64,000 nucleotides of DNA from Octopus sinensis (Eukaryota): the NCBI RefSeq assembly GCF_006345805.1, contig NW_021834553.1, positions 1-64,000 on the forward strand. The letters run 5' to 3'. The notes beneath the pieces were generated by a model that was not told the origin of the DNA, ran no database searches, and saw nothing but the letters and a program-made list of their open reading frames with translations. Made by a program: the position numbers and the translations under genes. Each line of letters begins with the position of its first letter. Position 1 is the first letter of the stretch. This document shows positions 17,728 through 17,751 of this stretch, one piece after another.

Positions 17728-17751
17728 CTGAATGTTGTACCAAAACCTGTA
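17728..17751 (-). CDS. ANKS1B: Candidate 24-nt microexon in the PTB domain (YRFWYNIQ)
   Basis: Pyrimidine tract ctctgatctttctatccttctacaaccc, then ctgttacag|TAC AGG TTT TGG TAC AAC ATT CAG|gttagt. Symmetric phase 0 with no stop, in a small unique island between microsatellites. Confidence 0.55.

Follow-up and report, generated by a model that had tools for sequence, protein, structure and literature searches.

ANKS1 exons and a candidate microexon in the Octopus sinensis window

The stretch of DNA analyzed here (the window; 64,000 nucleotides [nt]) comprises bases 1-64000 of Octopus sinensis scaffold VCDQ01005416.1 (67,711 nt) and carries exons of the gene ANKS1, among them a candidate 24-nt microexon within the phosphotyrosine-binding (PTB) domain. 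We placed the ANKS1 exons by tblastn with ANKS1 sequences and found all of them on the minus strand: two exons encoding the SAM1 domain (~39878-39776 and 35896-35787), two encoding the SAM2 domain (32803-32664 and 31392-31309), a 213-nt (71-residue) linker exon between SAM2 and PTB (KRHSSPFVSN...DADEIRRE; 28291-28503), and the first two exons of the PTB domain (21332-21204 and 19154-19083). The ANKS1 exons in the window are 100% identical to the ANKS1 proteins of Octopus bimaculoides (P0001 and P0002). The linker exon is found in P0002 and in the O. sinensis RefSeq protein XP_029656875.2 (P0119) and is missing from P0001, which makes it a probable second alternative exon of ANKS1.

The second PTB exon (YLGSAVVWQLNGIDSTREGIAKMK; 19083..19154, minus strand) encodes strand beta1 and a helix, and its product is 100% identical to P0001, P0002, and P0119. 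It ends on the complete codon that closes the motif AKMK and is followed by gtaaaa, so the candidate exon, which is in phase 0 at both ends, would keep the reading frame. An intron of 1331 nt (17752..19082, minus strand), rich in microsatellites and in a repeat resembling a short interspersed element (SINE), separates this exon from the candidate, and this exact interval is removed in the RefSeq model. The candidate itself (TACAGGTTTTGGTACAACATTCAG; 17728..17751, minus strand) has no stop codon and encodes YRFWYNIQ. On the minus strand the surrounding sequence reads ccatcctctgatctttctatccttctacaacccatggctgttacag, then TACAGGTTTTGGTACAACATTCAG, then gttagtactact, with ttacag at the upstream boundary of the exon and gttagt at the downstream boundary.

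Several candidate splicing signals accompany the exon. A putative branch-point motif, CTGAT, lies 39 to 35 nt upstream of the exon (17786..17790, minus strand), and is followed by a polypyrimidine tract (CTTTCTATCCTTCT; 17772..17785, minus strand) that is set back from the splice site, with no AG between the two. The 3' splice-site AG (ttacAG; 17752..17753, minus strand) is weak, scoring 0.5 bits against a rough position weight matrix (PWM), and is the site used in XP_029656875.2. The order of these elements, with CTGAT ahead of the tract and then 20 nt free of AG, fits a distal branch point from which ttacAG would be used as the first AG. The 5' splice site (CAG/GTTAGT; 17722..17727, minus strand) matches the U1 consensus at eight of nine positions and scores 8.7 bits. 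Five nucleotides into the exon lies another AG (TACAG/G; 17747..17748, minus strand) that could serve as an alternative 3' site; as an earlier note made from the sequence alone had proposed, its use would yield a 19-nt exon that shifts the frame, with a premature stop predicted in the next exon.

That note had described a pyrimidine tract, ttacag, eight stop-free codons, and CAG/gttagt in a small unique island after the AKMK exon, and every one of these elements is present in the minus-strand sequence. The island (17723-17800) occurs once in the window. In gene orientation, its upstream edge is an (AAC)n/(AC)n microsatellite (17801..17848), and on its other side a (TAG)n-type trinucleotide microsatellite (period 3, ~30 copies; 17634..17722) begins right at the 5' splice site. 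We rejected the idea that the island is itself a dispersed repeat, as only its microsatellite flanks recur in the window.

Eight-residue inserts occur at the same junction in other lophotrochozoans

With the O. bimaculoides protein P0001 as the query, we searched 1.84 billion representative proteins exhaustively and found 8-residue inserts in ANKS1 of gastropods, bivalves, and a nemertean, at exactly the junction where the candidate exon would insert its product (the K/KST junction). These are QRLRRKLQ in Haliotis rubra (in the context ...KLK-QRLRRKLQ-KSTD) and also in Nucella lapillus, HRLRRKLQ in Biomphalaria glabrata, TKFKRKIQ in Mytilus trossulus, QKFRRKLE in Ylistrum balloti, and LRYWERLK in the nemertean Tubulanus polymorphus. 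Two intron-less, transcript-like JGI contigs encode LRFLRQLQ and YEHWEQNQ. In Tubulanus, isoform X8 is without exactly these eight residues, and the insert is thus annotated there as a cassette.

The octopus candidate shares with these lophotrochozoan exons its junction (after K-[LM]-K and before KST or KSA), its phase, and its 24-nt length. The encoded peptides are also alike, with a hydrophobic residue at positions 3 and 7, R or K at position 2, and Q, E, or K at position 8, and YRFWYNIQ matches the pattern x-[RK]-[FLY]-x-x-x-[LI]-[QEK]. The octopus peptide differs in its exposed aromatic residues Y1, W4, and Y5, where gastropods and bivalves have R or K at positions 4-6. The earlier note had called the insert unusually aromatic; this holds against the basic molluscan inserts, but W4 is shared with Tubulanus (LRYWERLK) and the unplaced transcript (YEHWEQNQ), and with these only.

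To quantify this likeness, we built a position-wise BLOSUM62 profile from the seven distinct 8-residue inserts and scored peptides against it. YRFWYNIQ scores 11.43, within the range of leave-one-out scores for members of the family (1.3-16.5). A score of at least 11.43 is reached by three of the 90,539 stop-free 8-mers in the six frames of the window (~3e-5), and by two of the 2,553 8-mers that end in Q. When the comparison is confined to stop-free 24-nt segments between AG and GT on both strands, YRFWYNIQ ranks first of 314 candidates, and the runner-up scores 7.29. Because the candidate had been fixed before the profile test, this similarity constitutes independent evidence of orthology.

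A RefSeq model uses the upstream splice junction

The exhaustive search also returned the O. sinensis RefSeq protein XP_029656875.2, which is coded on VCDQ01005416.1 from 45085 to 17500 and joins ...REGIAKMK straight to YRFWYNIQ. The upstream junction is as proposed, and the model supports use of the proposed 3' splice site. At the downstream boundary the model reads through gttagt into the microsatellite, giving a protein of 394 amino acids that ends in ...PLLGI. Its C-terminal tail (VSTTITNATTTT...PLLGI; 17500..17727, minus strand) is 76 residues long, consists of translated intron and (TAG)n-type microsatellite, and closes with a TGA at 17502-17500.

Taken literally, XP_029656875.2 would make YRFWYNIQ part of an alternative last exon, in which the 3' site is used, gttagt is not, and the protein lacks most of the PTB domain. 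The RefSeq model encodes just this product, down to the stop at 17502-17500. We looked in the window for the next PTB exon (KSTENMASV...) and did not find it in positions 1-17727; since base 1 of the window is also base 1 of the scaffold, this exon must lie beyond the scaffold start, leaving the annotation pipeline without an acceptor to splice to. Moreover, the 76 residues of the tail are the translation of a trinucleotide microsatellite, a strong 5' splice site sits at the very point where the tail begins, and the homologs all return to PTB sequence after the eighth insert residue. We therefore consider an alternative last exon very unlikely. XP_029656875.2 is best read as a truncated model whose 76-residue tail is an artefact of annotation at the end of the scaffold, and the homologs, in which KST follows residue 8, suggest that octopus uses the 5' site at CAG/GTTAGT.

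The other end of the model is also incomplete. It begins at an internal methionine (MQSFGAGIARESVFV...; window 45000-45085, minus strand) that aligns in the middle portion of full-length homologs (...IADIMASFGAGIARESVF...), indicating that the N-terminal ankyrin-repeat part is missing as well. Upstream of this coding start at 45085, at ~50830-52850 on the plus strand, the window contains reverse-transcriptase-like open frames (e.g., ...LLYADDLALIAESLSELEEKFQVWKQGLESKGLRINLAKTKVLISRK) that look like the remnant of a non-LTR retrotransposon.

Taken together, the homologous 8-residue inserts at the junction, the profile similarity, and the RefSeq use of the 3' site lead us to conclude with good confidence that the candidate is a real coding exon of ANKS1, the cephalopod counterpart of the 24-nt K/KST exon of gastropods, bivalves, and a nemertean. 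The proposal of the earlier note that a real, in-frame 24-nt PTB microexon lies at this junction is supported by these results and by the vertebrate ANKS1B contrast described below.

Splice signals and comparison with O. bimaculoides

A number of observations weigh against this conclusion, beginning with the splice signals. We scored splice sites with a rough PWM, using consensus frequencies and the base composition of the window as background, and scanned the 19-kb intron part of the window for in-frame, stop-free AG...GT segments of 3-51 nt. On this scale the 3' site of the microexon, at 0.5 bits, falls well short of those of the other exons of the gene (5-14 bits). Of the 491 candidates in the intron part, the microexon is the only one in which both scores are at least as high as its own. 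The remaining ~128 kb (both strands) contains five equally good decoys, however, which corresponds to ~0.75 expected per 19 kb, and by summed site score the microexon ranks 13th of 491. Given this decoy density, the splice signals alone do not separate the microexon from chance.

SRRM3/4 (eMIC)-dependent neural microexons resemble the octopus exon in being 3-27 nt long, in keeping the frame, and in combining a weak 3' site with a strong 5' site. Microexons of this class carry an enhancer with a UGC motif shortly before the 3' AG. The 80 nt upstream of the octopus exon contain a single UGC, at -48, which together with the weak 3' site counts against the exon, and no GCAUG occurs within 150 nt downstream of it.

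The second set of contrary observations comes from O. bimaculoides, whose models P0001 and P0002 read AKMK/KSTENMASV and so skip the exon. Intron DNA at the orthologous locus (L001; LGKD02021027.1) is 79-84% identical to the window, and the collinear blocks end at window position 17905 (L001 16911), ~150 nt short of the exon. Past this point L001 continues with a (CA)n array and a SINE-like element, then with T-rich sequence and an N gap of 1,348 nt (17644-18991) that starts ~0.7 kb downstream of the alignment break. We found no match to the exon in the assembled part of L001, the locus that holds this gap, when allowing up to 7 mismatches in 30 nt. Judging by distance, the O. bimaculoides exon may fall in or near the N gap, and the gap may also account for the O. 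bimaculoides models that are without it. The SINE-like repeat (ggttccaggttcagtcccactgcatg...) is found in the window at 18840-18980 and 17300-17356 and in more than ten copies in L001, with 78-90% identity; one O. bimaculoides copy sits at the alignment break near the microexon.

Protein databases add two further points of this kind. The only octopus model with YRFWYNIQ reads through the 5' site, and no octopus protein joins 17728 to the next exon. A word-indexed protein search with an insert-containing query, which apparently returns only matches of ~0.55-1.75 times the query length, yielded no protein with YRFWYNIQ and no insert-bearing protein from any other cephalopod; no further cephalopod ANKS1 protein came out of the representative search. 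In addition, the AKMK-YRFWYNIQ junction of the RefSeq model may stem from protein homology or ab initio prediction and not from RNA-seq. In that case, it would be partly redundant with the peptide-similarity test.

Some of these points would fit a chance pseudo-exon, an AG...GT pair with an open frame that happens to lie in a long, AT-rich intron and never becomes part of an mRNA. Its splice signals are those expected by chance, the O. bimaculoides gene models pass over it, and the candidate was first picked by scanning for these very features. What a pseudo-exon would not produce is a peptide of equal length that resembles the 8-residue inserts of seven other lophotrochozoan sequences at a level reached by ~3e-5 of the 8-mers in the window, or a 3' splice site that is used in a RefSeq model. 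We thus judge a pseudo-exon to be highly improbable, and continue to read the candidate as a real ANKS1 exon.

Small splice variants appear to recur at the K/KST junction

The earlier note had linked the octopus insert to vertebrates, stating that human ANKS1B reads AKMR-ANCQ-KSTE where ANKS1A reads AKMR-KSTE. Protein sequences confirm the contrast, with mammalian ANKS1B reading AKMR-ANCQ-KSTEQ and ANKS1A reading AKMR-KSTEH; forms of ANKS1B without ANCQ also exist, and both solved structures of the ANKS1B PTB domain (PDB 2M38 and 8YM2) include it. ANKS1B, also known as AIDA-1, is a major scaffold of the postsynaptic density. Its insert lies at this very junction, where the helix gives way to the loop that precedes beta2, and forms with and without the insert both occur. 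ANCQ and the related peptides VGCQ and RVCQ also share with the octopus peptide a penultimate hydrophobic residue or Cys followed by Q. The vertebrate exon is 12 nt long, however, compared to 24 nt in octopus, and encodes Cys where the octopus peptide, which ends in N-I-Q, has Ile. None of the internal AGs of the octopus exon could give a 12-nt form, and a 12-nt microexon encoding x-x-C-Q was found neither in the part of the intron available for O. sinensis nor in the assembled intron of O. bimaculoides. The closest relatives of the octopus exon are the 24-nt lophotrochozoan exons and not the 12-nt vertebrate exon.

Other length variants occur at the same point (P0010, P0024, P0171, P0123, and P0003). 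Four-residue inserts are found in Capitella teleta (RVCQ) and in an ANKS1A-like sequence (VGCQ), Priapulus has five extra residues (15 nt), a cyprinid ANKS1B reads AKMR-VR-KSTEQ, and one sequence reads AKMR-STEQ, with one K missing. The models that we saw for Lingula, Owenia, three bivalves, amphioxus, a hemichordate, and chelicerates have no insert at the junction. Overall, the K/KST junction seems to be a place where small splice variants turn up repeatedly in Bilateria. Many partial bird ANS1A and ANS1B models from genome projects (P0007, P0012, P0015-P0017, P0019, P0020, and P0022) contain unrelated fillers of 10-22 residues at this point, such as VSFTTLIIFSFLFQ; these look like prediction artefacts around the microexon intron and not like real inserts.

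It is possible, if somewhat doubtful, that the junction holds one ancestral bilaterian microexon, whose 24-nt form (molluscs including octopus, and a nemertean), 15-nt form (Priapulus), and 12-nt form (vertebrate ANKS1B, the ANKS1A-like sequence, and Capitella) would differ in length because the 3' splice site has shifted.

The octopus exon might alternatively be real but constitutive, and not an alternatively spliced (neural) cassette. In the protein clusters examined, the RefSeq isoforms of Haliotis, Mytilus, and Biomphalaria all contain the insert, and the exon-less models of O. bimaculoides could be artefacts of the assembly gap. Set against this, the Tubulanus annotation has the exon both included and skipped, vertebrate ANKS1B likewise exists in two forms at the junction, and the 3' site of the octopus exon is far weaker than those of the neighbouring constitutive exons. 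We consider constitutive inclusion unlikely, and infer that the octopus exon is probably included alternatively, perhaps in a tissue-specific manner, and that its inclusion may have a functional effect.

The insert is predicted to extend a helix of the PTB domain

We compared AlphaFold2 models of ANKS1 with and without the insert. In the octopus form without it (P0001), a helix spanning residues 126-140 (IDSTREGIAKMKKST) is followed by a loop and then by strand beta2 (147-153), with predicted local distance difference test (pLDDT) scores of 91-97. In an insert-bearing homolog (P0115), the helix spans residues 345-366 and runs unbroken through the insert (L358-Q365; pLDDT 91-96), after which come a short helix and beta2 (376-381). 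As read from the homolog's model, the 8-residue insert is predicted to lengthen the helix before beta2 from 15 to 22 residues, or by about two turns. The earlier note had proposed that the insert remodels a PTB loop; it is better described as extending the helix that precedes the loop.

Nearly all members of the family have hydrophobic residues at insert positions 3 and 7, which are F and I in octopus. Spaced i/i+4 from I and M/L of the helix, these positions probably continue its buried stripe. The remaining positions would face solvent; gastropods and bivalves have basic residues there, and octopus has Y, R, W, Y, N, and Q. In the nuclear magnetic resonance structure of AIDA1, the loop that starts at the insert point (Q51-P62) is disordered (PMC3683042), and extra residues should thus be easily tolerated there. 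The idea that a 4-residue PTB insert abolishes binding to APP was not borne out: the same study ascribes the antagonism to a segment of 26 residues that exon 14 encodes (PMC3683042).

Short alternative exons have been described in other PTB domains. Exon 3 of NUMB (33 nt; ERKFFKGFFGK), which defines the PTB-long isoform, provides an extra binding surface for MDM2 and is reported to be a chordate invention (PMC6778778). BLASTP pairs YRFWYNIQ with RKFFKGFF of this exon, whose sequence we checked against 5NJJ. Both are short exons, alternatively spliced in NUMB and probably so in octopus, that encode basic and aromatic residues between the helix and beta2 of a Dab-like PTB domain. They differ in length (11 residues in NUMB, 8 in octopus) and belong to different gene families; this, together with the chordate origin of NUMB exon 3 (PMC6778778), marks the two exons as analogous and not homologous. 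APBB1-3 contain 6-nt PTB micro-exons which, like the micro-exons of tensins, are conserved and alternatively spliced in neuronal adaptors (PMC4317164). The APBB1-3 micro-exons differ from the octopus exon in encoding two residues, and in lying at a beta-turn beside the bound peptide instead of at the helix before beta2. Our literature searches found nothing describing an 8-residue ANKS1 exon family or a cephalopod ANKS1 microexon.

These comparisons suggest how the octopus exon may work. U1 would pair with the strong CAG/GUUAGU site, while at the weak 3' site the distal CTGAT branch point and the tract, followed by 20 nt without AG, would lead to ttacAG being picked as the first AG. With so weak a 3' site, the exon is likely a cassette that can be skipped. 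Its inclusion would place YRFWYNIQ between ...REGIAKMK and KSTENMASV..., extending the amphipathic helix before beta2 by about two turns, with F3 and I7 prolonging the buried hydrophobic stripe and Y1, R2, W4, Y5, N6, and Q8 exposed. The new surface would arise at the point of the fold where NUMB gains a basic and aromatic segment from exon 3. By analogy with NUMB, inclusion may switch a secondary interaction surface, for protein or membrane, and leave the NPxY-binding groove untouched.

Implications

Our reading of the locus corrects RefSeq XP_029656875.2, whose last 76 residues are intron and whose true product should run on into the PTB domain. It also extends to cephalopods a widespread but undescribed 8-residue exon of ANKS1, whose insert can already be seen in database proteins from other phyla. 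Across PTB domains, it points to the end of the helix before beta2 as a position of short alternative exons, found in ANKS1 of at least five phyla as well as in NUMB. If the forms at the K/KST junction do descend from a single ancestral microexon, it would be among the few microexons conserved between protostomes and vertebrates, and octopus would have re-tuned its exposed face from basic to aromatic. A splice-controlled PTB surface in an animal whose large brain evolved independently would offer a testable case for how microexon programmes evolve.
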